Shown piece after piece: positions 3,329 to 25,011 of a DNA stretch of 64,000 bases (position 1 is its first letter; each line of letters starts with the position of its first letter). The notes below the pieces were generated by a model. That model did not search any database, was not told the origin of the DNA, and was given only the letters and a program-made list of their open reading frames with translations. The position numbers and the translations under genes were made by a program. Source of the stretch: Lytechinus pictus (lineage: Eukaryota); assembly GCF_037042905.1 (NCBI RefSeq), contig NC_087259.1, positions 30,566,001-30,630,000 on the forward strand, in the 5' to 3' direction.

Positions 3329-3574
3329 GTCTGACCCTTGAACCGCTTCGTTATGATGTAGGCCCTAGCTACGATTAGCGATGTTACAGAATGCTGTTTT
3401 GAAGAACAATTTATAGATAGAAAGTATTATTTAACAAATACTTATTCATAATCACGTATTAAATTTTAGTATTTGTTGAATAATAATTTTAATCTATAAA
3501 TTGTTCTTCAAAACAGCATTTTGTAACATCGCTAATCGTAGCTACGTCATAACAAAGCGGTTCAAGGGTCAGAC
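3329..3574. mobile_element. Hairpin MITE (~245 bp)
   Basis: GTCTGACCCTTGAACCGCTTCGTTATGA ... TCATAACAAAGCGGTTCAAGGGTCAGAC, with inverted symmetry along almost the whole length. Confidence 0.8.
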
Positions 3575-3604
3575 CTTATGGCCCGAATTCACAAAGGTGG
3601 ATTC

Positions 3605-3792
3605 TACAAAATCCACAGATTTTAGAATCCGCGGATTTTTGAGTCCATGGATTCTGGAAAATCCGCGGATTCTGCAGTTTGTGATTCACCAACGGTGGAC
3701 TCAAAAATCCGCGGATTCCACCAGACCCACGGTTGAGTCCATGGATTCAACCGTGGACTCAACAAAATCCATGGATTCAACCATGGATTTTC
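3605..3792. repeat. Left subterminal array of palindromic motifs (AATCCRYGGATT variants), putative Myb-protein binding sites
   Basis: About 9 copies such as AATCCGCGGATT, AGTCCATGGATT and AATCCATGGATT directly inside the left TIR. Confidence 0.8.
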
Positions 3793-4100
3793 AATCAAAT
3801 CTAGGGATTTCCCCTTTTTTGAGACTGCACTGAGCATGCTCAGTGTCATAAAAGAATAAACATCTGCAGCATATACACAATAAACTAAAAATATATTATT
3901 TCAAAATACATGTTTGCTGGTACAGACCCCCCCCCCCCCCCCATCTCCCAAGAATTCTGTTTGCTGGCATTGGTTGTTGTGTATCATTACACACACACAC
4001 ACACACACACACTGTACACACACAAAATAGAACACATCATCAGCTGGCTGCACTTAATCAACAACCATCATCATCATCATCTGTTAAAGTACAGTCCACA

Positions 4101-7100
4101 ATGGCCTTGAAGTGGCAGAAGGCGGAAATTAATTATTTAATTGAATTAATCGCTGACAGACAACAAAAGATTTGTAATAGAGAAACGCATCACAAGGCCA
4201 ATGAGGCGAAGACTGCCGCGTGGAATGAGGTGGAGGAGCAGTTCTGTGCTCGATTCGGGAGGCGGTGGCCCCTCCACAAAATGAAGGAGCTGTGGAAGCG
4301 CCAAAGAGGGTATGCTAAGAAAGAGTTTAGCAACTTCAAAGCTAAATTGAGGCAGACTGGTGGCGGTCCTCCACCATCCCCACTGTCTGCATCAACCATC
4401 CTAATCAAAGAATTGCTGCCAGGGGATTTTGTGCAACTGCAAAATCCCTTCGACGATGACGTTGTTCTGGCAAACGAGCAGGCGATGACAGCTCTGGACT
4501 TTATTCGAGGGGTTCACAAGTAAGTCCAAAACAGTAACGAAAATTGATTAGAAATGCATTTAATTTTATGATTGTAAACATACTCATGCTGATAAAGTAT
4601 GTAAGATCATTATATTGACCCCTCCCATGCATTACTAATTAATTTCCTTTGAAAAAATAGGATTATATCTCACTTATCCTCATTTAAAAACTTGTCAATT
4701 CTTTTTAATATCGATAATACATTTCAATGTCGTCTGCGCCGCCATCGCACCGCAAAAAGTATTTTTGTAGTCCCATTCGTTCATTTGCGCGTAGTTCAAA
4801 ACCATAGTTTGGCCAAACTCCACAGATTTCAATGTGTGTAGGTCTATCGTCAGATTTAATGTGAAACCGAACGATAAACGAACTCAAGCTAGTCACGTCT
4901 ATCGATGTTAAGAGGTCTATATAGTTCAACCTTCTTTAAATTAACTTTTTATGTGGCTAAATGCAAAACTTACCTCAAATAATCCCTTTATCGGTGCCTA
5001 TATTGATGAAAATTTCCACATTTTGCCGAGCTAACTCCAATTCGTACTCCGTACTCCAACTTTAGTTTAAACTTTTAGATCAGCTGTGCAGTCATGTGAC
5101 TGATTTATGAGACGCCGTTTTTCCACAATTTTATCTTAATTATGAAATGTCTTTTATCATATCAGTTGTAAGGCCCATCCCATGACATTTTTCTCAAAAC
5201 TTTACTGGTCAGCTCGTCTCGTTCTCACTCCATTTTTATGTCTTTTTTAATCCTCAGTTGTGGTAAGATTCTTCTAATTAAATTAGTTTAGCTCACAAAT
5301 TCCAAGCCGTAGGCCTACCGAAAAAGGGCTACTAATTTAGAAACGATGATAAAACAACACAGAGATATATTTCAATTTACAAATCGTTTTGGGTGATTTC
5401 ATTTTTGTTTTTTAAAGGGTTTGTGTAATATGCCTTTAAATATGTTCTAGATATTTTAGCAACTAATTGTCCCTTCTGGGTCCAGACTAATTCAGCTAAC
5501 TAAAAATTAAACAAACATCTCGATTCACTTAATAAATCTTATGATTGCCCGCACAGGACATTTTCAGATATTAGATGAATGAAGCAGGGGCCGCGGAAGC
5601 GGGATATATCCAAAACTGTGTCTAAAAACATTTTTAAATAAATGTAAACAAATTTCCAGATGATTGTGATTTTTGTCTGGTCAGACGTCCCCGGCCACCT
5701 CCCCCCCCCCCTCCCCCATATATAAAGAGAGCCAAAAAAAAAACCTACTCATACTTTTGGAATATTGAGAGGCATTTATTATCCAATACCCCCACCCCCA
5801 TAAAAAATAAACCTTTTTTACAAAATATCGACAGGGCCTATGAATATAAAAAAAGTCTTTAATTAAGAAAGGTATTTTTTAAGAAAATATATTTTTAAAA
5901 ACAAAGAATTTCATTGCTACCAAAATGGTGGAATGTAACCCACAATGGACCTGAACAGGGGCGGATCCAGGATTTCCCCATAGGGGAAGTTTTTAACCAA
6001 AATTTAAGGGAATTAATTCGTCCACGAAAAAAAGTCATAAGCATATTAAGCAAAAATAAAAATTAACAAAAAATTAAGGGTATTTTGTCCACGAAATAAA
6101 TTGACAAGCCGAAGAAAGGGGGTTTTAACCAATAATTAGGGGTACTTCGTCCACAAAAAAATATTGACAAGCAAAAAAAAAAGGTCTTCCCTTTTAAAAT
6201 GGGGAGGGGCACACTTTTGTTTAAACGGAATTTTTACATTATAAATTTTAATTGTGCATATCTCAACAGGGAGGGGACGGCACAGGCCGGCTGTGTCCCC
6301 CTGGATCCGCCAGTCGACCTGAAATTAACTTTCTAAGCAAAATAAAAATAAAAAGAGATTAAGGTCATTAAAAAAAATCCAGTTCAATGTATCTTTATAA
6401 GTTCAATATGTAAAATTTTCTTTGCAGATCATCTTCAACAATCCATACACATGGTTCAGCCGCCCAACATGCCCAAAGAGATCCGAAGAGTAGCACTGAA
6501 GCGTCAAGGTAATTATTCCGTTATTGAAAAGAAAAATATGTAGACCTGAACAAAATTTAAGAGTATTAATTCGTCCACGAAAAAAGTGATAAGCAAAACA
6601 AAAAAAAATTCCAAAATATGTTTGTATACGAAAAAAAATTGACAACCAAAAAAGGGGGTTTTAACCAAATATTAGGGGTACTTCGTCCACAAAAAATATT
6701 GACAAGCAAAAAAAAACGTCTTTACTTTTAAAATGGGGAGGGGCACACTTTTGTTTAAACGGAATTTTTACATTATAAATTTTAATTGTGCATCTCAACA
6801 GGGAGGGGACGGCACAGGCCGGCTGTGTCCCCCTGGATCCGCCAGTGGACCTGAAATTAACTTTCTAAGCAAAATAAAAATAAAAAGAGATAAAGGTCAT
6901 TTAAAAAAATCCAGTTCAATGTATCTTTATAAGTTCAATATGTAAAATTTTCTTTGCAGATCATCTTCAACAATCCATACACATGGTTCAGCCGCCCAAC
7001 ATGCCCAAAGAGATCCGAAGAGTAGCACTGAAGCGTCAAGGTAATTATTCCGTTATTGAAAAGAAAAATATATAGACCTGAACAAAATTTAAGAGTATTA

Positions 7101-10100
7101 ATTCGTCCACGAAAAAAGTGATAAGCAAAAAAAAAAAAAATTCCAAAATATGTTTGTATACGAAAAAAAATTGACAACCAAAAAAGGGGGTTTTAACCAA
7201 ATATTAGGGGTACTTCGTCCACAAAAAATATTGACAAGCAAAAAAAAAACGTCTTCACTTTTAAAATGGGGAGGGGCACACTTTTGTTTAAACGGAATTT
7301 TTACATTATAAATTTTAATTGTGCATCTCAACAGGGAGGGGACGGCACAGGCCGGCTGTGTCCCCCTGGATCCGCCAGTCGACCTGAAATTAACTTTCTA
7401 AGCAAAATAAAAATAAAAAGAGATTAAGGTCATTAAAAAAAATCCAGTTCAATGTATCTTTATAAGTTCAATATGTAAAATTTTCTTTGCAGATCATCTT
7501 CAACAATCCATACACATGGTTCAGCCGCCCAACATGCCCAAAGAGATCCGAAGAGTAGCACTGAAGCGTCAAGGTAATTATTCCGTTATTGAAAAGAAAA
7601 ATATGTAGACCTGAACTTATATTTTCCAATGCATTAGCCAAAGAATCGAACATATTGTTTTACTTAAATCTTTTTTGGGGGGGATGGGGTTAAATGGCTA
7701 TGCGCTTTTTTTTTTAAATATAATTTTTTATGTATTGCCTAAGCATGATCGAACTGATACTGAACTAATGAAACAATAAATATTTAGGCTATTCTTAAGT
7801 GTTTCCTTTGTCAGTGTTGAAATATGACAAATATTTTCATGCACTTCAGTCATCAAATATTCAACTGATGTTCATTTCTACTCTAGTTCAATTTAATTGT
7901 TTCCCTTTTATTACAGCAGTCAATCCAACATTCTGGCTTCTTCGTTGTTAGCAACATCATCATCTTTCGCAGTAAGGTAATTATTACCAACATTCTCCAT
8001 TAAGTGTTCATTCAAATTATCATGATTCGTATGCAGTAGAAAATCATTATTGTCATATCCCTCTTATTAATATTATCATCATGGTCGTTGTTATTATTAT
8101 CATCACCATCACGGTTATCGTTATTATTATCATCATCATCATTATTGTCACTATTATTATCATCACCATCATCATCATATTATTATTATTATTACTATTA
8201 TTAATATTCCTACAGCAAGAAACTGATCCACAATGTGCCGCACTCAACCCAGGTGAGGTAAATGGGTACCGGTAGGAAGTAATTCCTTAAAAAGCTGTGT
8301 GCGCTATGAACGCCTAGCTTAGCCGGGTAATTATAGGAGCGCCTTGAGCACCTAACAAGGTGGATATGTGGGCAATATAAATACCCTATATTATTATTAT
8401 TATCGTCATTATGACCTTACACATGCCTATTTTACATATTTATCTACATTTCTAGAATAGGTATCCACATGGAAAATTACAAATCGCACTGCTAGAAAAC
8501 ATGTATCGCATAGGTACAGGTATTATGGTATTGCATTTATGACCTTAACAAGAGTAGTGGTCTATACTGATTGACTTGGGACAGGAGGCTTTATCCCACA
8601 GTAATTAAGTTAACTTTGGTGTCCCAATGAAACGGTTGATATTTGTATTATCTATTCTAAAATGTATTTATGTATTATTTGCCGAATAAATAGTAATAAT
8701 AATAATAATAACAAATTTAATAACATGAATTATCTTTACAGACCCATTTCCGGAGTTGAGACACCCCAGTGCCATACACCTGTTTCCAACACGGCCTCTA
8801 TCCCTATTGACCTGACAAGTGACATTGACGCTTCAAGGTATGAAACGTTTAAATTTAGATCATGGTCACATGACAAAGTTGACAAAATTGAATCCATGTT
8901 TTATTAATACCGTACGCAATCATCATTCTCTGAATACCATGGCGGCACCGTGGTGGGGGGGGGGCGCATTTCCCCACCCCCCCCCCCACATCCACCTAAA
9001 ATTTTGTAAACCGAAAAACCAAAAACGTGTATTAAATGTTGTTTCTGTCCGCTTCTGCATGCTCCACCCAAAATGTTCTTGGCCTGACCTATGTATTATG
9101 TATTGGTATATCTTGTTTCTTCATTACAGCAACCATCCTTCCAGCAGTTCTCGACCATATGCATCATCTTCATTTCTCTCTTGTCCTAGGTAAATACCAC
9201 ATAAAATATTATAATTGTTTCAATTATCTGTATTTATTCATGAATGTAATTATTCAATATATATAATTGTGTTTTTCCCCAGGGATTGCTTAGATTGTTT
9301 ATTCCCCATGCTCCGGCCTCCATTTCGAAACAAACAAACAATTGATATCTATGATTTTTATATGGAGTCTAAAATTTTTTGAAACGCGCTCATTTGCCAG
9401 GTATACTGAGAAAAGGGGACATTTTAAGGACTGATTTTAGGAATTCATTAAGAGCAGACATATCTCACTAATCCACTAATGCGAACGTAAGCATGGACGG
9501 GAAATGATTTACATTAATACCTTAAAATGGGGCAATCACTTTAAGTAGTCATGAAAAAGAAGCATATGTCACAAAAGAAAACAATAACTCGCCACTGGAT
9601 GTCATATTATACTTTGCTTCGTTACAGATCAGCATCATTGTCAAAAGAAGTCGTTAATGAATGTGATAAGCCAGGAGACGAAACAGATGACTTCCCCAAA
9701 ACAAGGTATTAAATTGCAAATATTATCAACCTAATTTGTTGATAAAGCATGCATATTTTTGTCATTTCTATCTTTGGTGGGCTACTTTGACCATCAATAG
9801 GAGAGATGAAACTTAAACTGGTAATAAACAGGAATGATAATTGGTAGAATGGAGGTTATTTCAGAGAAGTATTTCTGTGGTCATTTATCATTGAAACATA
9901 GGCCTATATATAAATGAAGATAAGATAATTAAAATTAAGAGTGGAAAGAAGTATCATTTGCCATTTGCAATGTCATTCATAAGGACAAAGGAACTTCTTA
10001 TATAAATGTATTATCAACATGTTCAAATTTCTTTTGAGGGTAACCATCCTTTTGCTTCTCTTCTACAGCAATCAGTCTTCAAGCGTTGGAAGACCATTCG

Positions 10101-11134
10101 CACCGTCCCTTTCCTCTACATGGTAATTATTGCTCATGTTTCTACTTTGCAAAGGTTGCCATTAAATATCAATCCATGTTTTAAACTTCCAAAGAAAAAT
10201 CAGGCAAAGCAATGAAATCAAGTGGATAAAAGTTCTCTGTATTACAGCGCAATGTAAAGTTGTCCATCACAATACATATATATTTTTTTAAGATTAAAAT
10301 GTAGAATGATTTAGAATTTTGAAAATTATGCTTTATTCATGTCCTTTTTGCCAACCTACTCTTATAATTCTATTATCTCTGAATATTTCAAATAATTTTG
10401 AATTTGGGGGGGGGGGGGGGCAGTCTGCCCCCTGACGAGCCACAACCCATGCAAAGGACGTATCCCTGCCCCCCCCCCCCCCTGATGAGCTTGAAAGACC
10501 TTATTTGCCCCCCCCCCCCTGACGAGCTTGAAAGACCATGATCACTCTTATCAATGGAAATAATACCTGAAATAATTCAAAGCAAAATCAATTCAATTTG
10601 ATAACAGACAACAATTTAATATATTATTTTGTCACATTTTCCACCCATTAATAACCACAATTTACATTATTATTTAACTATGATTAAATAGATTATGACT
10701 GTTAAAACTATTTTTCTGCAAGTCAAGTGATATGCATGTAAAAACTAATTTGTTGAAATTCAAATACATCATACTATCATGGAATACCATTAAATCTTAA
10801 TTAAATAAATTTTTTATTTTGGTCAATAATTTTTAACAGCAATGCATCACCTCGAAAGAGGAACTTGGAAAATCGTCGCCAAGGCACCAAGAGAGCTCGT
10901 GTGACAACAGAGGAAGCCATTCTAGAGCTGGACAAAAAAGAGCACGAGCTCAGAATGAGGCTTATGCTCAAAGAGCACGAAATCAAAATGAAGTTGATCA
11001 ACGCTGAATATGAAAATAAAATGAAAATTGCCAATGCTGAACATGCCATCAAGATGGACATTTTTTCTTTACAGAAATGTACTGAAGCAGCAAAGAACAG
11101 AGAAGCCCTTGGCTACCCTAATTCCGAGGATTAA
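4101..11134 (+). CDS. Harbinger Myb/SANT-like DNA-binding protein (MSANTD/NAIF1-like), multi-exon, ~434-448 aa
   Basis: Exon 1 4101-4519 encodes a trihelix Myb/SANT domain (KWQKAE..LIELI..AWNEV..F..KELWKR..TGGGPPP). GT-AG phase-2 exons follow at 6428-6508, 6960-7040, 7493-7573, 7917-7976, (8216-8257 optional), 8742-8837, 9130-9189, 9628-9705 and 10069-10122. Terminal exon 10840-11134 encodes a basic patch plus coiled coil (EHELRMRLMLKEHEIKMK). All join in frame with no stops. Confidence 0.85.
5956..6315. mobile_element. hAT-like MITE in intron 1 of the Myb gene
   Basis: CAGGGGCGGATCCAGG ... CCTGGATCCGCCAGTC with 8-bp flanks GACCTGAA at 5948-5955 and 6316-6323. Confidence 0.75.
5998..7616 (+). 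repeat. Tandem triplication, ~532-bp unit, each containing an 81-nt coding exon
   Basis: Near-identical units with exon starts at 6428, 6960 and 7493 (periods 532 and 533). Confidence 0.95.
8216..8402 (+). mobile_element. 5'-truncated SINE body and tail
   Basis: GCACTCAACCCAGGTGAGGTAAATGGGTACC core and GAGCGCCTTGAGCACC...ATAAATACCCTA(TAT)n tail, typical of marine-invertebrate SINEs. Confidence 0.6.
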
Positions 11135-12741
11135 GAATTGAAATCATCAATTATGGTCTATCCATGCATGTACACATATTCTGTTAATAATTGAATTTAA
11201 TTAAAATTATAATATCCAATAATATATATTATATAAACAGTACTGCAGATTATATCAAATACTTATAGCTAAAGAAATTACAGAAGTTCTTGATTTGCTG
11301 ATGTGGTTGGGAGAATTCATTTGAATATTTATATCATAAAAACTGTATATAGACATTATCTATTCATAAATTAGGAATTATGTTGTAATGGATGACAATG
11401 TACTAGAAAGACTGAGAAAAACAAATATAGTATACAGTACCTGACTCATTATCAATATTCATGAAAACTAGGGCAATAAAGTTTAAAATGTCCAGCTCAG
11501 ATGTCAGATATGGGTAATTATATTTCATATTTATGTTATTAATGTACATATATTCTTCACTCTCTATGATGATTAAGTATTTATTGAATATTGATATATG
11601 ACTTCGGCATTATCAATTGAAAAATACACGAAGAGCATGACAGTAAGAAAGTGAGTATTTATTTTTTAAAGTAAACCTAGTTAGAAGGATCTGGTCTTTG
11701 TCTGAATGATTTTCACACTTCTCTAACTTAAAGAAATACAATGGAATTATAAGATTTTGTATATATGTTCATATATCAAACACAAGTATCGAAAGACTCA
11801 CTTAAAACCAGTCTTCTTAATATCTAAGAATTGGACCACGACAATGTCAGTTGTTGGGATGTTAGACGTAGAAATATAAGATATCAATAAATAAACGCTA
11901 TGTTTCTTGAAAAATGAATATATGCTGTGATATATTCAATAAAAATGTATATAAATCACAGTAATATTTACACCATGTGCCATTAGAATTATAATGTTCA
12001 TTGAAATAAAACACATGTGATATGTTTCTTTCAATTCATATTCCAATGCCTTACATGTATATATCCGACAATGGAAAGGCCATCAATTCAATTTGATGAG
12101 AGAAGTAAATGAATGGATAGTTTGCAAATAAACTGCATTTCCTGAAATTGCAATCACTCAATTTAATATTGTTCTGTATCATTCTTTCATTGTATGGCAA
12201 CAATAACATACACATTGCACAATATTTATCCATTCATTAACTGTAGGCCCAGTAGATGCATTATCAGAGATTATTGTTGTTGACAGAAAAAAGAAATCAT
12301 TGGAAACCAACTTCTGCAATTGGGGCATAAAAAGAGTTGACATTATTTCTAAATACAAAACAAGAACAGTATTGCCTGCAGCAGAGTCTCAAAGAGTGCT
12401 GTAATTTCACAGGACACTTCTTACCAGCATTCACAATTAATCTGTTTCATAATGCAATAAGTGATTTATTCTCTTGAAATGATATAAAGAATTGTCTCAA
12501 TTTTCTCATCAATAACATATAAAGTGGCATTTCACATATATAATACCAGGAAGTGATTTTTTTTAGTCCTTTTTTTTATAGAGTCTGCAGCAAAAAGATT
12601 CACACGGCAAAAAACACATTCATCAATAAAAGATGAGTACTTTCTGAATTAATGAAAATGGGAATGTGGGATCATGAAGCTTACAAATTTTCCAGTTAAT
12701 ACCACAATTTACAGAATGATTCTTTTTATCAAAAATATTTT

Positions 12742-13390
12742 AAGACAGAAATTAGAATCCATTTGAATTGTACGGGATGAAGCAATTGACTTCATCAACA
12801 TGCTTGTTGAAATGAGAAGGAACACAGTGAACAATAATAAAAAACAAGGTAAACAGGAGTAAATTACAAAGAGGTACTTGCAATGGAGACATGGCATTAA
12901 CGTTCCAATCATTTGTTGTTAAGAGTCATCAGGGATGGTTCAAGCGATACTGCAGGCCAAAAATAATTATATTTAAAGAAATAAGAGTAAAAATTAACAG
13001 AGCAAAACTCTGAAAGTTTTATCAAAATCTGATAAAACAAAATAAGTTATTGAATTTTAAAGTTTGACAACATTTTGCAAAAACGTTTAAAATGTCATAA
13101 CTTTATTTGTTGTCCAAATTTAATGAAATTTCCAGTGTTTTGTTTGTCTGATTTTACTTTATCTGTTCAAATCATACTGTTTTCAGCCTGGAGTATCCCT
13201 TTTAATCCCAACACAAGAAGGAAGATCGAATCCAGAAGTTTTCCAACATTGAGTGAAGAAGTTGAAGCTACTTAACAAAGAATTCTAAGAGTAATGCAGG
13301 TAACCTGATGTGCTGGGTGCATCGATGGAAACTGTTTACATTAGGAGTGAGTGATGGGAAACCATTCCAATCAAGTGTAATAGTTGATTG
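12742..13390 (+). pseudogene. Decayed inverted copy of Harbinger transposase coding exons 2-3, interrupted by a MITE remnant (~12955-13205)
   Basis: AAGACAGAAATTAGAATCCATTTGAATTGTACGGGATGAAGC, TTCCAATCATTTGTTGTTAAGAGTCATCAGGGATG and AGAAGGAAGATCGAATCC...GAAGAAGTTGAAGCTAC...GGTGCATCGATGG...TACATTAGGAGT align to the reverse complement of 17391-17610 and 16337-16623, with stops and indels. Confidence 0.8.
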
Positions 13391-14170
13391 CAAAAAAGAG
13401 TTTCATGCAGCTAACCTTACATCCTTAGTTACATTCACTGGTAGTACAAATATTTTTTTTAAGTAATTAACCATCCTGACTACACTCAACAATAACTCCA
13501 AAATAAAGATTTTCTGAATATTTTTCTATAACTTGTCACATCCCAAATTGAGAAATAATTTCAATTGAATGAAAATTTTAACTTGTGTAAAATAATTTTA
13601 AAACAGCACAAGAATATGTAAATTTTGCCATAGAGTAACTGATATAATAGAACTGTGACAGCTTGCATGAAATGCTATTGAATAGAAAATCAATAATTCT
13701 CTAATAATGTTGTAATTCTTAAGTGGCTAGTAATGACAGTAGTAGCTTTTACTAGGACGTAATGGCAGAGGTATAAAATATTACAGAATGTATATGATCT
13801 TTTAAAACATAAATTTCAGCTGCGGTTATGATGTCAAGATGGTTCAAAAAGAATTCAATAAAATGACAACCGAGGATTTGTAAACTGGCCATCTTCATTG
13901 TATTATATTTCATCTGAGATTTAATTTAGGGTATTATTATCTTGTTAGGTGCTCTCTATTACCCCGGTTAGGCTCGGCTGCTGATTCTGATGCTCACAGC
14001 TTTTTCATGTATTTAAGAACATAATTAAAAATATAAATGTAGTTGCATAAAACTCTTGTTTGCTGGAATGATAACAAGTACCTTGACAGCATCAGCATTC
14101 ACAGATTTTCTCTGAAGTGACTGAAAAAACAGCAAGGGCTTGAGCAGATTGTTCTGAGTGGTTACCTGGA

Positions 14171-17100
14171 TTAGCGGGTGAAGTGATCCTCAATGATCTG
14201 TTCTCTCCTGAGCCTACCAGCGACTGCATCGCGGTGGCCAGGAGGAAGGTGATCCAGTGGCATATCATTATCAGGCTCAGGTCCTTGAAATTCTTCCTCG
14301 CGCCACTCCAAAGATATATTCCAAAGGACCGAGCATGCCACTATAACTATGAATGCAGTGTCCACCTTCACACGCAAATCATTGAGGCAAGGGAATCTCC
14401 TCTTCCAACGGCCAAAGGTGCGCTCAATAACACAGCGGCCTCTCTTGTGGGCATGATTGTAGCGCATCTCTGGCCGTTGGAGAGGGTTTTGGAGGGGAGT
14501 CATCAAAAAGGGGAGGCACGCGTACCTGCAAAATAATGAGAAAGAAACAAAATAATAAGTGAACATAGATAATATTGAACAAAACTTGCCAAATAAAAAT
14601 GCAAAGGACTTCTGTAAGTATTCTGTTGCATTTTCAAGATGACAAAAAGACCTAAAATAAATATTCAAAAAACCCCATAATATCCAAAGTATATAAAATG
14701 TCAATGAATTTGTTTATAATTATCATGGTTAAGGTTTGATTATCTTGAAACATGTTCTGTAAATCAAAGTTACATGTTATTTTCGTTAATTTTGTGTGTG
14801 GTCTATATCCATTTTGAAACTGAAATGCATATTTCTTCTTCCTTTCATCACCCTTAGTTTTAGTTTACTATTTGAAAAATCATGGGGAGGAGCAGCCACT
14901 CCACCACCCCTCCCCCTAGCTATGTAGCAGTTATAATTCATGAAATTTAAAAATTACTTTGACATACAAATATATAAGGCCACGCATCTTGAACTCACCC
15001 CATTTGTGTTATGTCACAATTGAATAGTGCACCTATCGGTAATCAAATGGTCATAACTTAAATAAAAATTATCCTATCCTTACAAAACTATATTTTTTCA
15101 GAAGAAAATTTCATGAGGATTCCATAAATGGCATTAAGTGAAGTAGAAAAATTGCTAACATATTATGAGTGAAAATCTTTGACATTTTACAACCCCCAAT
15201 ATACTTTATTTCAAACATCCATAATTTTTTCCTCTTTGCCCATATCATTAATTACTTAACATTTTTGTATTGCTTATTATTTACATGATATATAACTTCA
15301 AGGGATTCATTCATTTCATACAGATCATATTGATATGTAAATTTTGAATATCCAATACTGACATTTCTTTTCTGTCATTGCTTTACTTTCTAAAAAAATC
15401 ATAATAAATGAAGGACTCTGTGATGTGTACAGAGGTGTATTTTTATGCCCATTATATCAAAGGACAAGTCCATCCCAACAAAAATTTGATTTGACTAAAA
15501 AGAGAAAAATCCATTAAGCATGACACTGAAAATTTCATCCAAATTGTTAGAAGCAGTATTTTATATTTCATGCATTGTTTTACGGGAAGCAAGTGAAGGT
15601 TTTTTTAAGTACATGTAGTTGGTTACATTTTTTTTTTAATCGACATACCCACTATCTCCAAGCAACAACCCAGAACCATCTGCTCTTGCCTCTAGCTGCA
15701 ATTTCAGTGCACTCTCATTGAAAATCCGTGAATCATGAGTGCTGCCAGGCCACCTTGCCACGATACTTGTTATCTTTCCAGCATTATCACAAACAACCTA
15801 ATCATGGTACACAGAGAAACATCAATAGGAGAAAGAAAAAAACACATGATAAATTGAATTCGTTCATCATCTTCTTTTCATCTTCTTAACACCTTCTTCA
15901 TCATCTTTTCATATTAATATATATGCTAACTTCTTAAAATAAAACAAATCAATTAAAGGGGAAAAACATTTTATGAGAAACATATAAATGAAAATCAATA
16001 TCAAAGTATATCAAAAGTACCTGAAAATAAATTCTTAGACTGTAGCATCTAATTAATATCTAAATAAATAAATTTCTAATGAAAATGCTCAAGAGCATAT
16101 TTAAAGGAAAAATAAGAAAAATACAGTACATTACAAAGAGAGGGTGCTAAATAAAACAATCTAAATTTCAATGTTTAAAAAAGAAATCAATGACCGCTAT
16201 TATACTTTAGTGACATTGGAATTATGATAGGAGTACAAGTCACATTATCGACCCTTTACCAAAACTTCAGACTGGCATAACAGAGTATACGTTTATGAAG
16301 ATAAGTACCGGTAATATATTAAAAATGCAATCTAACCTGCACATTGATGGAATACCTGTTCTTCCGGTTAAGAAAGTACAGGGCTTGTTCCCCACCAGGA
16401 CTCCTAATGTATACATGAGTCCCATCGATGGCACCTATGACGCCAGGAAACCCGCAGTACTCGTAGAATCTCTGCTGGGTAGATTCAACCTCTTCTCTCA
16501 TAGTTGGAAATCTTATGAATTCTCTCTTCCTTCTTGCAATAGCCTCAGAAACATCTCTGATGACTCTGCAAACAGATGATTGGGACATTGATGCTTCGTC
16601 CCCATGCATCCTCTGGAATGAACCTGAATTAGAAAAAGAAATTCTAATGTATAAAATTTGAACTGGATAATTTTCCTAATAAAACCAAAACAATTATAAA
16701 TAGAACATAGATAAAGAAAATAACAAATGAATATTGAAAAATATAATGGGATGAAACATATTGAGCGTAGTGAAACATGGTGTTTGGTGTTAGAAAAATC
16801 AATACGCAAATGCATTTGTTACACCGATCCTTGTAATGACAATGATTACTTGAATTATGGTCAAACATCCAGAAATTCAATTTTTTTTTTCGTTTCAAGA
16901 GGGGGGGGGGGGGGACAGAATATTACATATTTAGTTTGATGTTGTTGATTAAAGGTTTTTAGACAATTCTGATATCAGTGTTAACTAGGGTTCTGTCTAC
17001 ATTAGCTAATCAATATTATTATAAATGGATTACTTTGCACAAAAACTTTTACACCAGTTACTAGTAATGTAATGAGTTGCTTTAATGTAACCTAAATTCA

Positions 17101-18142
17101 TGCACTGGTGTACAGATGAAAGGGGGATCTTGGGGGGGCTATGCCACTTCTCTCTCTCTCTCTCTCTTGTTGACATTTATAAATTTAAGTAATGTCATGG
17201 AAAGTTGTGTGGATGTATAATGAAAATAACAATGACATCTTTTGTGGTTTATTAAACAAATTATTTTCACCAGCATTGAGTCATAGACTAGTGCAATAAT
17301 CAGAGACTGATGAATGCAATATATACATGTATGATATACCCCTCAAGCGCATCCAATATCATACATATTTGGTGGATAATATGAACTCACCAACTGCATA
17401 AAATCGCAAAGTTGTCAGAACCTGCAAAAAAACAGGTAGTGGTTCATTACGTTCTGTATTCCTCCTCAGATCACCCTCAAGCATGTTGATGAGATGGAGC
17501 GCAGTCTCTTTTGACAAGCGATACCGCATTCGAAAGGCTTCATCCACGTACAACTCAAAAGGATTCATTCTGTCTTGTAATCCCCTTTGAGGTCTGGGCC
17601 TATTGGCTATCTGTGTGTACATGGAAAAATTATTTAGAGTAAACATGAAAAAAGTGGTAATTCAAGATTCCCTGAACAATAGGCAAGGTTTGTAAACATT
17701 TAGCCACCCCCCCCCTCCTAGTCTTCTTAGGTATCATATGGAAATAGCCATGTCTATTTAGGATTAAGTTTGTTTTTCTTTTCCTAATTTTTTTACTAAT
17801 ACATACATTGCAATTTGCATACATCAAGTCACGTTTCAAGTAATCTGGTGCTTTAATTGCCGTACTTTCGTTCATTTTGGCTCAATCCATTTTTTATACC
17901 TTGGAGGAAAATTGTCACTGCTTGTGCAAGTAGGAACGAATATTTGCCATGTTGGTTTCATCACTAGTGCTTCAACAAATATCTCCTCCACATTTAGAAA
18001 CAATTTTGACAGTTATAAAAAAAGGAAATATTTTGTGATAAGCACTGCATCAGTATGTTTTTCAATAGAAACAAAAGCTTACCTCTCTGACCCTGTCGAC
18101 GCGATCAAGGTGCATCAAATGAGCACGGTGATTTTCTGCCAT
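14171..18142 (-). CDS. Harbinger DDE transposase (HARBI1-like, DDE_Tnp_4), 356 aa, intact
   Basis: Coding exons (minus strand) 18142-18083, 17610-17391, 16623-16337, 15797-15649 and 14525-14171; GT-AG, phases 0/1/0/2 compatible, 1071 nt in total. Motifs LRFYAVG, SQSSVCR, GAIDGTHV, SINVQVVCD, WPGSTHDSRIF, LLGDSGY and VIERTFGRWKRRFPCL are present. Confidence 0.93.
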
Positions 18143-19475
18143 ACCAGTATTTGTTCTGCATAGAAAATGAAAATGACAGAGGGTAAAGTTTCAATGGCAA
18201 AGAAAATACATATTAGATGAGCATGAGACTAGAATGAGGTTCAGTATTTATCTATTAACTCATTGAGATAACAGTTTGCCAAACTTCTCTCAAATCTGTA
18301 TTCTGAAAATTGTCTTACTCATTTTACTGTATCTCTGTAAGGACGTCCCCTATTTTATCTCTGAAAAGGCCCATTTTTTTTCCTTTGCTAAAAATACATG
18401 TGACTGCTCTCCCAAATTTAATTTCTTATGCTTCTGATTTCTATGATGTGCAATCAATGATAAAATTCAATCCTACAGATCAATCACAAGTTATTGGGAC
18501 AAGGACGAGTGTTACCTTCAATGGGAGAATGATATCAACAGCGTACTCCACCCGTTCTGAGAAACTATTCGCTGGCAAGTAACAGTATTACTCTGGCTGG
18601 TGGTAGACTGGTAGCTCTAATAACGTCACTGTGATCACACTGGCTAGAGACTGTACAGAATGATACATATTGACAATAGGCAATCAAATCATAGCTAAAG
18701 AAATACATAGGTCTATCTATAGTCTGCATGTCAGATCGATTCTTTCATGAACCAACATAAACAAATATGTTAATTTCAGACCCAATGTCAATTTTAGACT
18801 CAACAAATATGTCATTCACGATAAATAATATTGGAAAAGGGGGTTGACATTGGCGTGGAAAACTAGAAATTCAAGAAAAATAGAGGAAATGTATTTAAAG
18901 AAAATTCATCATACATACATGTTAGCAATCAACACTCTGTTTGGTTTGCTGAGCATTTACGTGATTTAGAATTTGCACATACCGGTAATTCTAGACTAGA
19001 CCCCCCCCCCCCAAAAAAAAACTTATGCACAAATACAAATAAAAAACAACATCTTATACAGGTCTCAGCACAGCCTTCCGAGAAAAAACTCCCTACTTAC
19101 CCCCCCCCCCCCCTCATACCCTCTCCATAAACACAGACTGCCATCATAAGCCATTGCATACATGTACATGTAGATCTGTTTATCCATACTTCTTTCTTAA
19201 TTAGGATAAAATGATTTTATGAAGTTCTAAAGAGCAATTTTGCATGTATAGACTGTAACATTTATTATTTTTAGACCACTGACCATTCGTTTACAATGTT
19301 TGTCATTTCGGCCAAGTTGTCATTGTTCCATCTCTAGCTTTGAAAAGGTGTGTGCATTGTCCTCATAAATTATCACCAAGCACTCTCTTAACATTTATTT
19401 TCATTAATGTCACAAGTTTCATAATCACAGACAATTAGCAAATTAAAAAAAAATATTCAGTTCCATATAGTCCAG

Positions 19476-20296
19476 GGGCGGTATTTTGAGGTCATTTTAT
19501 CTTTAAAATATTTTATTTTATCTCTTAAAATGAAATTGGTATTCTGAGATGACATTTTATCTCTCAGTTAAAATTTGAAATTTTATCTTGCGAATAATTT
19601 TATCTTGCGTATCTATGACGATACGCAATACAGAGCAGTGGCTGCGTAGACATACCCATCACGTATCTGGGTATTGCAACGCGCATGATGTGCTTGCGCC
19701 CAAGTTACTTTGAAAAAAAAAAAAAAAACTTAAAAGAGGGTAGGGGCTATTTTATCTCCGCGACGTTGATTTCACCAATATTTCTAGGTGAATTAACCCC
19801 AAATATTGACGCGAAAATGAAGAAAAATTAAATATTTATTGAGAATACCAGCTTAACGTTATTCCTGTACAATCAGAAAGTATTTCATAAGGCTTGTCTT
19901 GACTAATATTGTCTTTGAAATGATGCTTGAAAAGATGGGATATAGACTTCGAAAAAAGATGAGAGTATTGTCCTTTTTGTCAAAAAGAAATCTCTATAAA
20001 GACGCGTAAGCGTATAGTGTAAGCGTATTTGAAGTCAATAAATTGACGCAATCTCACTCCTTTGCCACACCTCCTCGCGGAATGGATTTCAATTGGTTGA
20101 GTGACACAAGAGAGCTATAAAAGCGCGTTTCTAATTGGATATTGATTAAAAAGTAGGTGTTTCTTATAAAATGAAGATAAAATTGTACTCAGAAAACCAA
20201 TTTTGAGAGATTTTAAGGGTATTTTATCTCACTGATTTTAACGGAGATAAAATATTTTATTTTATCTGAGATAAAATGGATCTCAGAATACCACCC
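19476..20296. mobile_element. Non-autonomous Harbinger-type MITE nested in the transposase 5'UTR intron
   Basis: TIRs GGGCGGTATTTTGAG / CTCAGAATACCACCC; CAG duplicated at 19473-19475 and 20297-20299; subterminal TTTTATCT repeats. Confidence 0.8.
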
Positions 20297-20377
20297 CAGA
20301 TCTAGATCTCTAGACTAAGGAATTATATTTTTTAAGTCACAGGCATATTTTTGGTGAGGACCTCTATTAAGTGGAAA

Positions 20378-21166
20378 GTTGGCGAAGAACAATAGGAAAC
20401 AAGATGGCGGCGTAAACATCGGGCAAGTCTCTTCCGTCTTTTCATAATATTTTTCTCATTTTTTAAAATGAATTCTTGTTTTAAAAAAAATCGATGGCGT
20501 AGAAATGTCGGAAATGAAGTTGTATCCCATGTACATGATTTAGGGCTAGATCTTTTAGAAGGAAATTAGAAATCTCGGGGGCGAAAGTTTCAGGTTTTTT
20601 GGCGGTACACACAGATGAATGGGAAGGAATACCTATTACCTGGCTTCATTGAGAGTAAGCACACATCAGCCGCCTGGCTAGTACAGGGGACTCAACAGCC
20701 ATATGTTTATGTATTTAACTTAAGTTGTTGTTGTTGTTAAGTTCGGATAAAACCGTGAAGTGAAGTCGCACGACAGCCGAAGACGAAGTAAGTCACTGTT
20801 TTTCCCCCTTTCTTTCAACTTTCAAGTTTATTTTCCCCGTGTTGATGCAAACCGTGCATGAAATTCAGGCCAAAACGGAATAATCTTTTATAATAGTATT
20901 AGTTAGGCCTAGGCCTAACTTTTTAGTAGGCCTAGCCCTAGGCCTATGACATGTTATAATTTATATTTTTATGAAATAAAAAAAAATTAAAGACAAAGAT
21001 CGGTGAGCACGTCGGGGAGATTTTTCATTGTCAATCCCCAGTATGGTGGCTGCACAATAATGAACCGTCTGTGTACGAGGAAACATTAAAAAAAAGAATT
21101 TAAAATGTTAAAAAAATCCTCGAAACAGACATGACTGACACTGACAGACGGCTGACAGCTGTCTAG
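20378..21166 (+). repeat. Dispersed repeat shared with 37463-38157 plus 39187-39194; carries a YY1-type motif and a splice donor
   Basis: AAACAAGATGGCGGCGTAAACATCGGGCAAGTCTCTTCCGTCTTTTCA ... CCTCGAAACAGAC ... CTGTCTAG is collinear in both places. Confidence 0.85.
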
Positions 21167-21661
21167 ATTATTTAGAGTAGGCCTAGGCCTAGACTGATTT
21201 TTATTCTCCAGGATCAGGAGCCTAAGTTCAGGCTAGAGTAGGATAGACCATGTAGATCTAAGAAAATCCAGCGACAGGGTCAGGAGGAATCAGAAATTTC
21301 GGAAGAACTGAGAGAAAAAGGGAACAAGTCAAGGGTCTAATCGTCTGACGGCCGACGGGTCCGTAACGGAACTCTAGCAGGTTCCGGGACAGCCCGACCA
21401 CCGGGGTCGGGCTGTCCGGTGGTCGGGCTGTCCGGACCCCCTCTAGCAGTGTCACAGAGCTCGCGAAAGACCAACACAGAAATGCACTTATGGGGCTACG
21501 CAAAACCATTTCCGCAGGAGAATTATTCACTCACTCGACTCTCATGACCGCACCTAAGATACATGCATTTTATGACATAAATTCGTACATTACTTCACAA
21601 ATCAATGCATAAAAAGTTACGAAAAATATTGCTCATCAAAACAAAATGTCAAATTACTCAC

Positions 21662-21805
21662 AATTTTCTCGGAGCTCGGTCCAGCAAGTATTTTATATCA
21701 CGGTGCTTTCACGTCCAGTGTTCCACTTTTTTAGCTGCAAAATTGCCGCCCAGCGATCGTCTGCATAAAATGTACCCAAATGCTGCGCTGTGATTGGCCA
21801 ATTAC
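21662..21805 (-). promoter_or_regulatory. Putative transposase promoter and non-coding first exon
   Basis: Minus-strand donor GTGAGTAA at 21661-21654; double CCAAT box GATTGGCCAAT at 21792-21802 just inside the right subterminal repeats; the ATG exon has its acceptor at 18157-18156, so an upstream exon is needed. Confidence 0.45.
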
Positions 21806-21811
21806 GCCTAA

Positions 21812-21990
21812 AATCCACGGATTCTGTGGAGTCCACTGTTCAGACCACCCCAAACAGTTGACTCGAAATCGTGACGTAATAGGCTTGGTCGAATCCGTGG
21901 ATTCGGTCGAGTCCACCTTTGTGAATCACAAAAGCGAATCAGTGGACTGTGGATCTTGCAAAATCCGTGGATTCGTCCGTGGATTTTGCA
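21812..21990. repeat. Right subterminal array of AATCCRYGGATT-type palindromes
   Basis: AATCCACGGATT, AATCCGTGGATT (twice), AATCAGTGGACT and GTCCGTGGATT inside the right TIR. Confidence 0.8.
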
Positions 21991-22315
21991 GAATCCACCT
22001 TTGTGAATTCGGGCCATTGTATTTGCTTTGTTGACAAACGAATCAAGGGATCTGCATGAGATTGGTCTGGTAAGAAACCTTCCATTTTTTACATTTTTAT
22101 CAACCAATTTTTTAAACCTTCATACGCATTAGGCGTAGGAAGGAAGGTGTAAAAATAAATAACATCACCACCATTTACGTGATTTTTACTTTAAAAGATG
22201 GATTTCTATCTTTGTTTTGGTCAGTCTCTTATGCGTCTATGAAAAGAGTGTCAAGACTCCATGATGAAGAAGTATGTCAAAATATTTAAAAAAACATCAT
22301 AGAGTCCTCAAGACT

Positions 22316-23496: not shown

Positions 23497-25011
23497 ATGG
23501 CTAACTCTTTCTCCATCCTGTTGTCATACATTGACAACCTTCTATGGGGTTGCACACAAATATTCTATGGGATTGTGTTCATCATCAATTTCAACTACCA
23601 GCTTGTGACGAGTCTATATAGATGCATCATTCAACTATGGGCACTGTTAATACAAACTGTGCTGTATACTGCCAAAGCTTTTGTGTTCAGCATTGAGTTC
23701 CTTGCCGAGTTACCGGTCTGGAGTTACCACATGGGAAAGTACCTGATTGATCTAGTCCAGAACCTGATGAGCAATGCAATTCAAGGTTGTATGTCATGGT
23801 CCTGGGAAGCTCTTGTGTACACTGGGGAGTTGCTGGGAAACATCGTTAAGAATCTACTGTTAGCATTCATGAGTGTTTGGACTCAGTTTTTAAATCTAGT
23901 CGTCTTCCAGTTTACCCTGTTTGCTGAACTTTTCACTTCACTGATTGGATCTACCTACAGTCATATGAAAGAAGCTAAAGGAAACACTGTACAGCTCATG
24001 CACAGTGTTGGAAGTGATACCAGAGAATTTGTGCACGGTGTCTGCAGCCTAATCTATGAGTTCTTCATCACTGGAGTAGCCTACCCTATTTCATTTGTAA
24101 ATGCTTGCACCCAAAATATGATTGATGGACTGTATATCTTTATGAGCATGTTGAAGGCTATAGAAGATTTTGTTATTGGAATTTTTGAAGTAGTGATCGA
24201 GTTATTGTATTCAAGCATCAGCATCATTATGAATGTTTTTTATGATATCGTGAACGCTTTCAAAGAAATATCCACATTCTTTATCAATGCGATAGACTAT
24301 GTTGGCCAAGCTTTGATTGACTGTTTTGATAGTGCTGCGGAAGGATACTCGTCACTTAATTTGTTTGTTGGAAAGAATTGGGGCGCCCTCTTGGCTCTAG
24401 CTCTCTGTGTAACCCTGGTGTGGGTTACTATCAATATGAACGGACAACACGAGAGAAATATCCAACACATCATCCAGGATCTCACTCGGCTAGTGAATAA
24501 CTTCACAACTTCTAGATCACGCAATGTCAACAGAGAACCCTTGAGACCTGAAGGTCATCTTCACCAGGATGTCCTTCCTGAAGATCAGCAGCAAGGTGAC
24601 CTTGATGTTCTTAATGAAGGAGAAGAGAATGGAGATGATGGCATGGACCAGGATGTACCAGCAGGTGAAGTAGGAGGTGTAGGAGACCAGCCTGGTCCAA
24701 GCCGATCGACCCACCACACACCATACTCATTTCGATCACGACCATTCACACCGTCAGGTGAGCCCGCTGAAGGAAGTGGCTCGGTTGAATATCTTGTGAG
24801 TAAACTTAAGAACAGATTAAGCGAGGAACAGGAAAGACAAGCATGTGTGGTATGTCTGGATGCAGTAAAGAATACACTCTTCATGCCATGTCGTCACCTG
24901 TGTGTCTGCGTACCCTGTGCAGACAGGATAGTCAGTAATGATGACATATATATGCGGATCTGTCCTCTATGTAGATCTAGGATTGGATCGATTGTTGAGG
25001 TTTATAGTTGA
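23497..25011 (+). CDS. RNF26: Multi-pass membrane C3HC4-type RING E3 ubiquitin ligase, RNF26-like, 504 aa, single main coding exon
   Basis: Long hydrophobic N-terminal half, acidic/disordered linker, and C-terminal RING CVVC..PCRHLCVCVPCA..CPLCR ending IVEVYS; ATG in AAGATGG context; this architecture matches RNF26. Confidence 0.8.
   Translation: MANSFSILLSYIDNLLWGCTQIFYGIVFIINFNYQLVTSLYRCIIQLWALLIQTVLYTAKAFVFSIEFLAELPVWSYHMGKYLIDLVQNLMSNAIQGCMSWSWEALVYTGELLGNIVKNLLLAFMSVWTQFLNLVVFQFTLFAELFTSLIGSTYSHMKEAKGNTVQLMHSVGSDTREFVHGVCSLIYEFFITGVAYPISFVNACTQNMIDGLYIFMSMLKAIEDFVIGIFEVVIELLYSSISIIMNVFYDIVNAFKEISTFFINAIDYVGQALIDCFDSAAEGYSSLNLFVGKNWGALLALALCVTLVWVTINMNGQHERNIQHIIQDLTRLVNNFTTSRSRNVNREPLRPEGHLHQDVLPEDQQQGDLDVLNEGEENGDDGMDQDVPAGEVGGVGDQPGPSRSTHHTPYSFRSRPFTPSGEPAEGSGSVEYLVSKLKNRLSEEQERQACVVCLDAVKNTLFMPCRHLCVCVPCADRIVSNDDIYMRICPLCRSRIGSIVEVYS

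Follow-up and report, generated by a model that had tools for sequence, protein, structure and literature searches.

An 18.4-kb element of Lytechinus pictus that is probably an autonomous PIF/Harbinger transposon

Positions 3580 to 22015 of the window, the 64-kb stretch of Lytechinus pictus DNA analysed here, are best read as a single autonomous DNA transposon that moves by cut-and-paste and belongs to the PIF/Harbinger (PHIS) superfamily; we put the probability of this reading at about 0.85. The lineage is still coding-competent and transcribed, and the giant unit moved very recently, its copies being only ~1% diverged. It is otherwise an ordinary selfish element and not a gene under domestication. 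The element belongs to a known kind, within which it stands out for its size and for a target duplication of the form A-W-T.

Comparison within the family places the termini at 3580 (GGCCCGAATTC) and 22015 (GAATTCGGGCC), giving a length of 18,436 bp. The initial annotation had recognised an element of ~18.4 kb but, with a span of 3579-22016, had set each end one base too far out. An inverted-repeat search of the window returned arms at 3578-3619 and 21976-22017 (42 nt, 95% complementary). The terminal inverted repeats (TIRs) begin with GGCCC and are near-perfect, as had been noted, with 38 of 40 nt matching and the 26 outermost nt identical. TIRs and a 3-bp target-site duplication, both required of the PHIS superfamily, are thus present. 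The duplication of the window copy is imperfect (TAT and ATT), and this copy has a surplus of 3 nt over its empty sites. Perfect ATT or AAT duplications flank six family copies. The middle position of the family duplications is only ever W (A-W-T), and TAA or TTA was never seen at the family copies or empty sites inspected. The coordinates of all features are given in Table 1.

Table 1. Features of the element and its target site, in window coordinates
Feature	Position	Strand	Basis or remark
Left target duplication	3577-3579		TAT, degenerate; ATT expected
Left TIR	3580-3619	+	Inverted-repeat search and family comparison
Left subterminal array	3610-3780		Palindromic motif (A/G)(A/G)TCCRYGGATT
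Myb exon 1	4101-4519	+	Myb_DNA-bind_5 (PF13873), Pfam E=8.6e-7
Tandem repeat, three 533-bp units	5998-7616	+	Each with one 81-nt phase-2 exon 'A'
Myb exons 'A'	6428-6508, 6960-7040, 7493-7573	+	One per 533-bp unit
Myb mini-exons (7917-10122)	B 7917(7920)-7976, C 8742-8837, D 9130-9189, E 9628-9705, F 10069-10122	+	
Myb last exon	10840-11134	+	Coiled-coil tail and stop
Decayed transposase-gene fragments, inverted orientation (12756-14179)	12756-13329, 14061-14179	+	Inverted-repeat and sequence comparison
Transposase exon 5	14171-14525	-	Catalytic E and stop; DDE_Tnp_4 profile 83-158; joint 14522>15646
Transposase exon 4	15649-15797	-	Second catalytic D, in LLGDSGY; Pfam profile 34-82; contig joints
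Transposase exon 3	16337-16623	-	First catalytic D, in AIDGTH; Pfam and contig joints
Transposase exon 2	17391-17610	-	Joints 16621>17389, 17610>18083
Transposase exon 1	18083-18155	-	ATG at 18142; contig joints
Transposase 5' untranslated exon	18516-19275	-	One contig (run X1), joint 18155>18516; upstream limit undefined
Nested ~840-bp high-copy element	19465-20304		Own inverted ends
Other nested repeats	8202-8412, 9416-9509, 12939-13212, 15454-15546, 20375-20598, 20985-21130		
Right subterminal array	21812-21985		Palindromic motif (A/G)(A/G)TCCRYGGATT
Right TIR	21976-22015	-	Inverted-repeat search and family comparison
Right target duplication	22016-22018		ATT; also in paralogous empty sites

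Inside the TIRs lie the two subterminal arrays described by the initial annotation. The core motif TCCRYGGA has six occurrences in 3628-3768 and four in 21814-21976, with a single further one in the rest of the 64-kb window, and ATCCNNGGAT has nine matches (0.89 expected), seven of them subterminal. These palindromic motifs are presumed to be binding sites for the Myb protein.

The transposase gene is on the minus strand and has five coding exons (18142-18083, 17610-17391, 16623-16337, 15797-15649 and 14525-14171), a total of 1071 nt encoding 356 aa. The DDE_Tnp_4 profile (PF13359) is covered fully and collinearly from 1 to 158 by three consecutive exons (1-34, 34-82 and 83-158). The catalytic triad of this IS5-like transposase, read directly from the sequence, is intact: D in AIDGTH, D in LLGDSGY and E in CVIERTFG. 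In contigs of three public runs (X1, X11 and X9) all of its introns are spliced out exactly at GT-AG, so the predicted splices are used and the intact spliced transposase first proposed is borne out. Read depth is 30-90 in the exons and 0-13 in the introns, and the transposase gene is thus both transcribed and spliced. The kinds assigned to the public runs are guesses ('?', 'RNA?'), and there were few raw stranded RNA reads (X21). A 348-aa model starting at an ATG at 17646 was ruled out by the intron at 17611-18082 and the further coding exon upstream of it.

The second gene, which is convergent with the first, encodes a protein of ~433 aa with a Myb/SANT-like DNA-binding domain, the partner found in PHIS elements. 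It has ten exons, all open and all with AG/GT borders, and this partner gene is intact, as had been claimed. The gene model is that of RefSeq XP_063959730.1, the product of a sister copy on C8, and exon 1 is 100% identical to residues 1-139 of that protein. The mini-exons were placed by tblastn of the RefSeq protein and the AG/GT borders were read from the sequence. Both genes are intact; expression is seen in spliced contigs for the transposase, whereas for the Myb gene it is known from the sister copy's RefSeq model, on which, and not on local reads, the splicing of the window copy is also based. The gene contains a 533-bp exon-bearing unit, present 2, 3 or 6 times depending on the copy. An earlier two-exon model (237 aa) was replaced after the RefSeq protein, of 406 aa, mapped to eight more mini-exons. 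A protein-homologue search with Myb exon 1 returned nothing inside the length limits used. Among the contig records searched, which may lack those of this genome, none encoded the RefSeq Myb protein or the RING-finger ORF downstream of the element.

A genome search found at least three non-allelic full-length loci, together with truncated and deleted derivatives. The sister copy on C8 (16223253-16241572, 18.3 kb) is collinear with the window copy over its whole length. Its flanks are unrelated, its ATT/ATT duplication is perfect, and it sits within a MITE having the same terminus. A 26-kb copy on C22 is likewise collinear. Genome-wide there are 2,243 matches to the 21-nt terminus and 0 to its reversed control. 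These ~2,200 copies are distributed across MITE-like elements; about a thousand such elements begin with this terminus and are probably non-autonomous passengers. So abundant a terminus makes it conceivable that two independent MITEs bracket unrelated genes by chance. This reading is refuted here, as in two other copies these ends and these genes are linked in an unchanged order, and at least eight paralogues of the flanking host repeat run from 3576 straight into 22016. Because these empty sites join the two positions, both ends belong to one insertion, of 3 + 18,436 nt. There are further copies (C29, the 74%-identity family).

The insertion site is an interspersed repeat. The initial annotation placed the element inside a host intron, a setting for which we find no support: when both flanks were scanned for ORFs and Pfam domains, no host exons emerged, only a RING-finger ORF beginning 1.46 kb downstream of the element and an upstream ORF (1614-2036). 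The upstream ORF has no Pfam match and may resemble the end of a protein encoded by non-LTR (LINE-type) retrotransposons.

Full-length copies could also arise from segmental duplication or as haplotigs in the assembly, the giant form never having moved as a unit. The copies on C22 and C5 have their right flank and an adjoining MITE in common, and so do the flanks of the derivatives C8b and C8c, and of C8d and C8e, coincide; the assembly therefore does contain duplications or haplotigs. As an account of the element itself this is nevertheless highly unlikely. The window and C8 copies are homologous precisely up to their termini, with 500-bp flanks that do not align, the C8 copy lies with its perfect duplication inside a MITE, and the window copy has exact paralogous empty sites. 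Independent insertions that have precise ends and 3-bp duplications share this 18-kb architecture together with its nested repeats.

The two intact copies differ at 1 of 1785 nt in their core exons and at 153 of 15457 nt (0.99%) in non-coding DNA (Fisher p=1.6e-6), so that the core exons of the window and C8 copies are ~17-fold less diverged than their non-coding DNA. The transposase coding sequence is 100% identical in these copies. The dN/dS ratio of the Myb gene against the C22 copy is 0.11, and the Myb linker exons, with 1.18% divergence, evolve neutrally. Divergence and dN/dS were summed exon by exon, the exons being searched singly. The contrast between core exons and non-coding DNA is evidence for recent selection on function.

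Strong conservation of the core exons, expression of the genes and the listing of the Myb gene in RefSeq as an ordinary protein-coding locus would each also be expected if the host had kept the two genes for a cellular function, as with HARBI1 and NAIF1, and the ends were leftovers. The initial annotation had offered an element part-way to such domestication as one of two readings. We consider it very improbable, as there are at least three non-allelic full-length loci with truncated and deleted derivatives, copies only ~1% different, precise insertions with 3-bp duplications and ~2,200 termini, both TIRs and both putative binding-site arrays are intact, and the Myb linker exons are neutral. 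The shared 18-kb architecture, the conservation of the core exons and the spliced transposase speak for the other reading, in which the giant lineage would be active and tolerant of cargo.

A recently dead family could look much the same, its members intact in appearance and transcribed but immobile, for instance through silencing or because a unit of 18 kb exceeds what can be excised efficiently. Full-length copies are few (3-4), only two are coding-intact, and frameshifts have already arisen in one subfamily: in the C22 and C5 copies the transposase bears a 19-nt deletion together with a 2-nt insertion. Recent death is nonetheless less likely than not, given a transposase that stays identical in copies ~1% different elsewhere and a giant form that has inserted at least three times. 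Three copies compared from a related family (8.5 kb, ends 68-73% alike) have only decayed transposase remnants.

The length of 18.4 kb is inherited and was not gained at the present site. It is accounted for by 13 introns, a 3-kb spacer between the genes and a 3.9-kb 5' region. Recognisable nested high-copy inserts come to ~1.9 kb of the 18.4 kb (~10%), and the remainder matches only copies of the same family. The earlier description, in which old MITEs and SINEs fill the introns, was therefore overstated; the nested short repeats travel with the element as cargo.

The transposase and its Myb/SANT-like partner would form the machinery of the element. A passage in PMC9710019, citing Sinzelle 2008, states that both Harbinger proteins are required, the Myb protein binding a subterminal motif and co-importing the transposase. 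By analogy with zebrafish Harbinger3_DR, the Myb protein of L. pictus would bind the TCCRYGGA repeats adjoining both ends, import the transposase into the nucleus and recruit it to the 40-nt TIRs, whereupon the transposase would excise the whole 18.4-kb unit and reinsert it at A-W-T, duplicating 3 bp.

Harbingers have already been noted in sea urchins (PMC8437027). Like canonical animal PIF/Harbinger elements such as Harbinger3_DR, the L. pictus element has a DDE_Tnp_4 transposase with a Myb/SANT-like partner, short TIRs, subterminal repeats (putative binding sites here), a 3-bp duplication, and associated Tourist-like MITEs and deletion derivatives. Autonomous Harbinger consensus sequences average ~4.1 kb (PMC4482050), whereas this element is ~4 times the usual size, as unusual as had been supposed. 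It also differs in having 16 exons (ten in the Myb gene; five coding and one 5' untranslated in the transposase gene) and a Myb gene holding an exon-bearing tandem repeat of variable copy number. The TWA duplication that defines PIF/Harbinger sensu stricto is replaced by ATT or AAT.

The Pangu group of PHIS has an ANT duplication and TIRs beginning with GG or AG (Han et al. 2015, PMC4482050). Its autonomous elements average ~3.5 kb and its second ORF is reported to be without known motif (PMC4482050). The L. pictus element is similar in its ANT duplication (ATT/AAT; six perfect pairs and the ATT of the empty sites), its TIR starting with GG and its DDE transposase without extra domains. It differs in that the middle duplication position is W only, and in having a clear Myb_DNA-bind_5 domain where Pangu has a domain-less ORF.

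HARBI1 and NAIF1 are vertebrate genes domesticated from Harbinger. They form a homologous protein pair, with a transposase-like protein of similar length (~350 aa), but are single-copy host genes without TIRs. The L. pictus element is no single-copy syntenic locus with lost ends: it exists in several copies with intact ends, and its insertion is recent.

The element provides a clean natural case of a Harbinger transposase mobilising 18-26 kb, which is relevant to how large a unit cut-and-paste transposition can move. Its A-W-T duplication and Myb partner together blur the division of Pangu from Harbinger by duplication sequence. Its genes, 'uncharacterized' ordinary loci in RefSeq, should be flagged as transposon genes. 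We suggest tentatively that this may be the largest PIF/Harbinger shown moving as a unit (18-26 kb), possibly still active, with a partner whose length shifts through 533-bp units (2, 3, 6). If so, the transposase/Myb pair would tolerate very large cargo and might be used as a native vector for large inserts in a genetically tractable sea urchin. The element is a candidate endogenous large-cargo transposon system for L. pictus, a genetic model.

The window, contig C15:30566001-30630000 of an 812-Mb assembly of the sea urchin Lytechinus pictus, contains a Harbinger-type element with two genes. An inverted-repeat scan of the window pairs 3578-3619 with 21976-22017 (42 nt, 95%), and comparison with other copies shows that the element really begins at 3580 and ends at 22015 (GGCCCGAATTC...GAATTCGGGCC), which gives a length of 18,436 bp. 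The element of the initial annotation is thus real, but each of its ends (3579-22016) lay one base too far out. The palindromic core TCCRYGGA is clustered next to both termini (see table), with one more occurrence in the remaining 45 kb; ATCCNNGGAT has nine matches where 0.89 are expected.

Features of the element, with related loci elsewhere in the assembly (C-prefixed)
Feature	Position	Strand	Detail
Left subterminal TCCRYGGA cluster	3628-3768		n=6
Right subterminal TCCRYGGA cluster	21814-21976		n=4
Myb exon 1	4101-4519	plus	mapping of 406-aa protein
Myb exon A (three times in 533-bp tandem repeat)	6428-6508, 6960-7040, 7493-7573	plus	81 nt
Five further Myb mini-exons	7917/7920-7976, 8742-8837, 9130-9189, 9628-9705, 10069-10122	plus	
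Myb last exon	10840-11134	plus	
Inverted decayed transposase-gene pieces	12756-13329, 14061-14179	plus	between convergent genes
Transposase coding exon 5	14525-14171	minus	
Transposase coding exon 4	15797-15649	minus	
Transposase coding exon 3	16623-16337	minus	
Transposase coding exon 2	17610-17391	minus	
Transposase coding exon 1	18142-18083	minus	
Transposase 5' untranslated exon	one boundary at 18516	minus	spliced contig
Nested ~840-bp element	19465-20304		own ~60-nt inverted ends; upstream of transposase
Nested high-copy repeats	8202-8412, 9416-9509, 12939-13212, 15454-15546, 20375-20598, 20985-21130		
Terminus pairs (examples)	C1:3189419-3189841, C2:19389107-19389529		
Empty-site paralogues (examples)	C8:31802298/31802299, C2:20181236/20181235, C10:29804209/29804208, C15:23734911/23734912		

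A genome-wide search with the left and right ends finds them paired elsewhere. On C8, the sister copy (C8:16223253-16241572) matches the window copy collinearly from end to end, its homology ceases exactly at the termini, and it has ATT on each side. It sits in a ~420-bp MITE that shares this terminus and has an ATT duplication of its own; like the window copy, it landed in a repeat. A copy on C22 (C22:652911-679103, 26.2 kb) is likewise collinear and has additional inserts. A truncated copy on C5 has the private changes, the right flank and the adjoining MITE of the C22 copy in common with it, and therefore represents either a duplicate of that insertion or a haplotig.

The window copy is flanked on both sides by sequence of an interspersed host repeat, and first-look searches gave 739 candidates for the left flank and 858 for the right. 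In at least eight paralogues of this repeat the base for window 3576 directly abuts that for 22016, so the locus is one insertion of 3 + 18,436 nt at ATT. This refutes a bracketing of the genes by the ends of two independent MITEs; on sequence comparison the element is one mobile unit. The left target duplicate is TAT, the duplication of the window copy thus being degenerate. The host repeat at the insertion site (window 3330-3576 and 22016-22265) contains an internal palindrome.

The minus strand encodes a DDE_Tnp_4 transposase, with Pfam profile positions 1-34, 34-82 and 83-158 on three consecutive exons and the whole catalytic triad, D (AIDGTH), D (LLGDSGY) and E (CVIERTFG). Its five coding exons comprise 1071 nt, which bears out the 356 aa first proposed. 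Contigs from three public sequencing runs (X1, X11 and X9, from three studies with two organism labels) were aligned to 13600-19590. In all three runs 14526-15648, 15798-16336 and 16624-17390 are cut out exactly; 17611-18082 is absent from contigs of X1 and X9, which overturned a start codon at 17646, and 18156-18515 is absent from one X1 contig, the X9 joint there being slightly different (18143>18516). All of these introns are GT..AG on the minus strand, the X9 variant joint excepted, and their removal indicates that the predicted splices are in use. Contig depth in this region is 30-90 over exons and 0-13 over introns, which is an RNA pattern, the kinds of run being only guessed.

Depth equals that of the exons over the 570 nt past the transposase stop (within window 13601-14526), and one 1.8-kb contig extends past 13600 toward the 3' end of the Myb gene; the two convergent transcripts may overlap. 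One of the decayed transposase pieces has 47% protein identity with two stops, another has 71-77% DNA identity to exons 3 and 4, and that at 14061-14179 abuts the true stop codon.

The partner gene, on the plus strand, is Myb/SANT-like (PF13873, E=8.6e-7), and both genes were analysed exon by exon. An exhaustive protein search turned up a 406-aa protein that matches Myb exon 1 at 100% identity; RefSeq XP_063959730.1 ('uncharacterized protein LOC129260079 isoform X2 [Lytechinus pictus]') is the Myb-like protein of the C8 copy. A two-exon model was ruled out by the mapping of the 406-aa protein to further mini-exons, each of which is phase-2 symmetric with AG/GT borders. The 533-bp tandem unit (window 5998-7616) bears the symmetric exon A, which encodes 27 aa, SSSTIHTHGSAAQHAQRDPKSSTEAS. 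There are two A units in the C8 copy (RefSeq 406/407-aa isoforms), three in the window copy, for which a protein of 433 aa would be predicted, and six in the C22 copy, two of them altered inside the acceptor AG dinucleotide. Since these features differ among copies, the length of the partner protein would vary by copy.

Non-coding divergence between the window and C8 copies is 0.99% (153/15,457), against a single difference at 1,785 sites in the core exons (Myb exon 1, Myb last exon and the entire transposase CDS; Fisher p=1.6e-6), and the transposase CDS is identical. The Ser-rich Myb mini-exons diverge by 1.18%, a neutral level. Comparison with the C22 copy gives Myb a dN/dS of 0.11. In the C22/C5 transposase there are a 19-nt deletion and a 2-nt insertion, and dN/dS is ~1; both lesions are present in X1 contigs, so this defective subfamily is transcribed too. 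The divergence pattern agrees with a lineage whose copies were, until very recently, filtered for function, and disagrees with host domestication; the suggestion that the element is part-way to that state is rejected. The other reading offered, an active giant lineage, is supported to the limit of sequence data.

Coding sequence accounts for ~2.4 kb of the element. The initial annotation described introns filled with MITEs and SINEs; nested high-copy repeats are indeed present, but those identifiable make up only ~1.9 kb (10%), and the other ~14 kb has matches confined to its own family. All the nested repeats lie within blocks collinear with sister copies, so they are common to the copies and travel as cargo. 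The nested ~840-bp element has at least 36 copies elsewhere (90-96% identity); a first-look count of 3,882 candidates refers to the whole 4.1-kb query 17647-21779, which includes it.

A location inside a host intron is unsupported, as ORF and Pfam scans of both flanks found no host exons. Upstream, an ORF at 1614-2036 has no Pfam match and is presumably similar to the tail of a protein from a non-LTR retrotransposon. A single-exon ORF of 504 aa (window 23497-25008, plus strand), 1.46 kb downstream, has a C-terminal RING domain (zf-C3HC4_3, E=1.3e-12), in a layout that we take to resemble membrane E3 ligases such as RNF26.

About eight internal-deletion derivatives (2.5-7 kb, 80-92% identical) retain the ends and pieces of both genes. 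The 21-nt terminus GGCCCGAATTCACAAAGGTGG has 2,243 genome matches, against none for the reversed control; many form inverted pairs 250-435 bp apart, and these are Tourist-like MITEs. A separate group of 8-14 kb end to end has the same terminus, with subterminal ends only 68-73% identical. In other Harbinger families of the genome transposase exon 5 is 74-79% identical in protein, and Myb exon 1 to the last transposase exon spans 5-10 kb, so long Harbingers are common in L. pictus. An older, more diverged copy (C29:935606-976082; 83-95% identical, one stop in Myb exon 1) seems to span ~40 kb. Under the second organism label, X9 and X11 contain spliced transposase contigs 90-99% identical to the element, and the 16441>17431 junction typical of 5.5-kb deletion derivatives is also found; the family therefore seems common to a close relative.

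By analogy, the element is mechanistically a standard Harbinger. For zebrafish Harbinger3_DR, a summary of Sinzelle et al. 2008 (PMC9710019) states that transposase and Myb-like protein are both needed, and that the latter, which binds a motif in the subterminal region, brings about nuclear co-localisation of the transposase. Harbingers were previously known from sea urchins (PMC8437027); our literature search found no paper on those of Lytechinus. Autonomous consensus sequences average ~4.1 kb for PIF/Harbinger and ~3.5 kb for 'Pangu' (PMC4482050), and this family is 4-6 times longer. Its ATT/AAT target duplication fits the ANT of Pangu and departs from the TWA of Harbinger; its second gene has a Myb domain, which Pangu is said to be without (PMC4482050). 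The initial observation is essentially right overall, and the family stands out for its length, for the exon-rich gene of its partner protein, in which an exon-bearing repeat varies, and for the target sequence.
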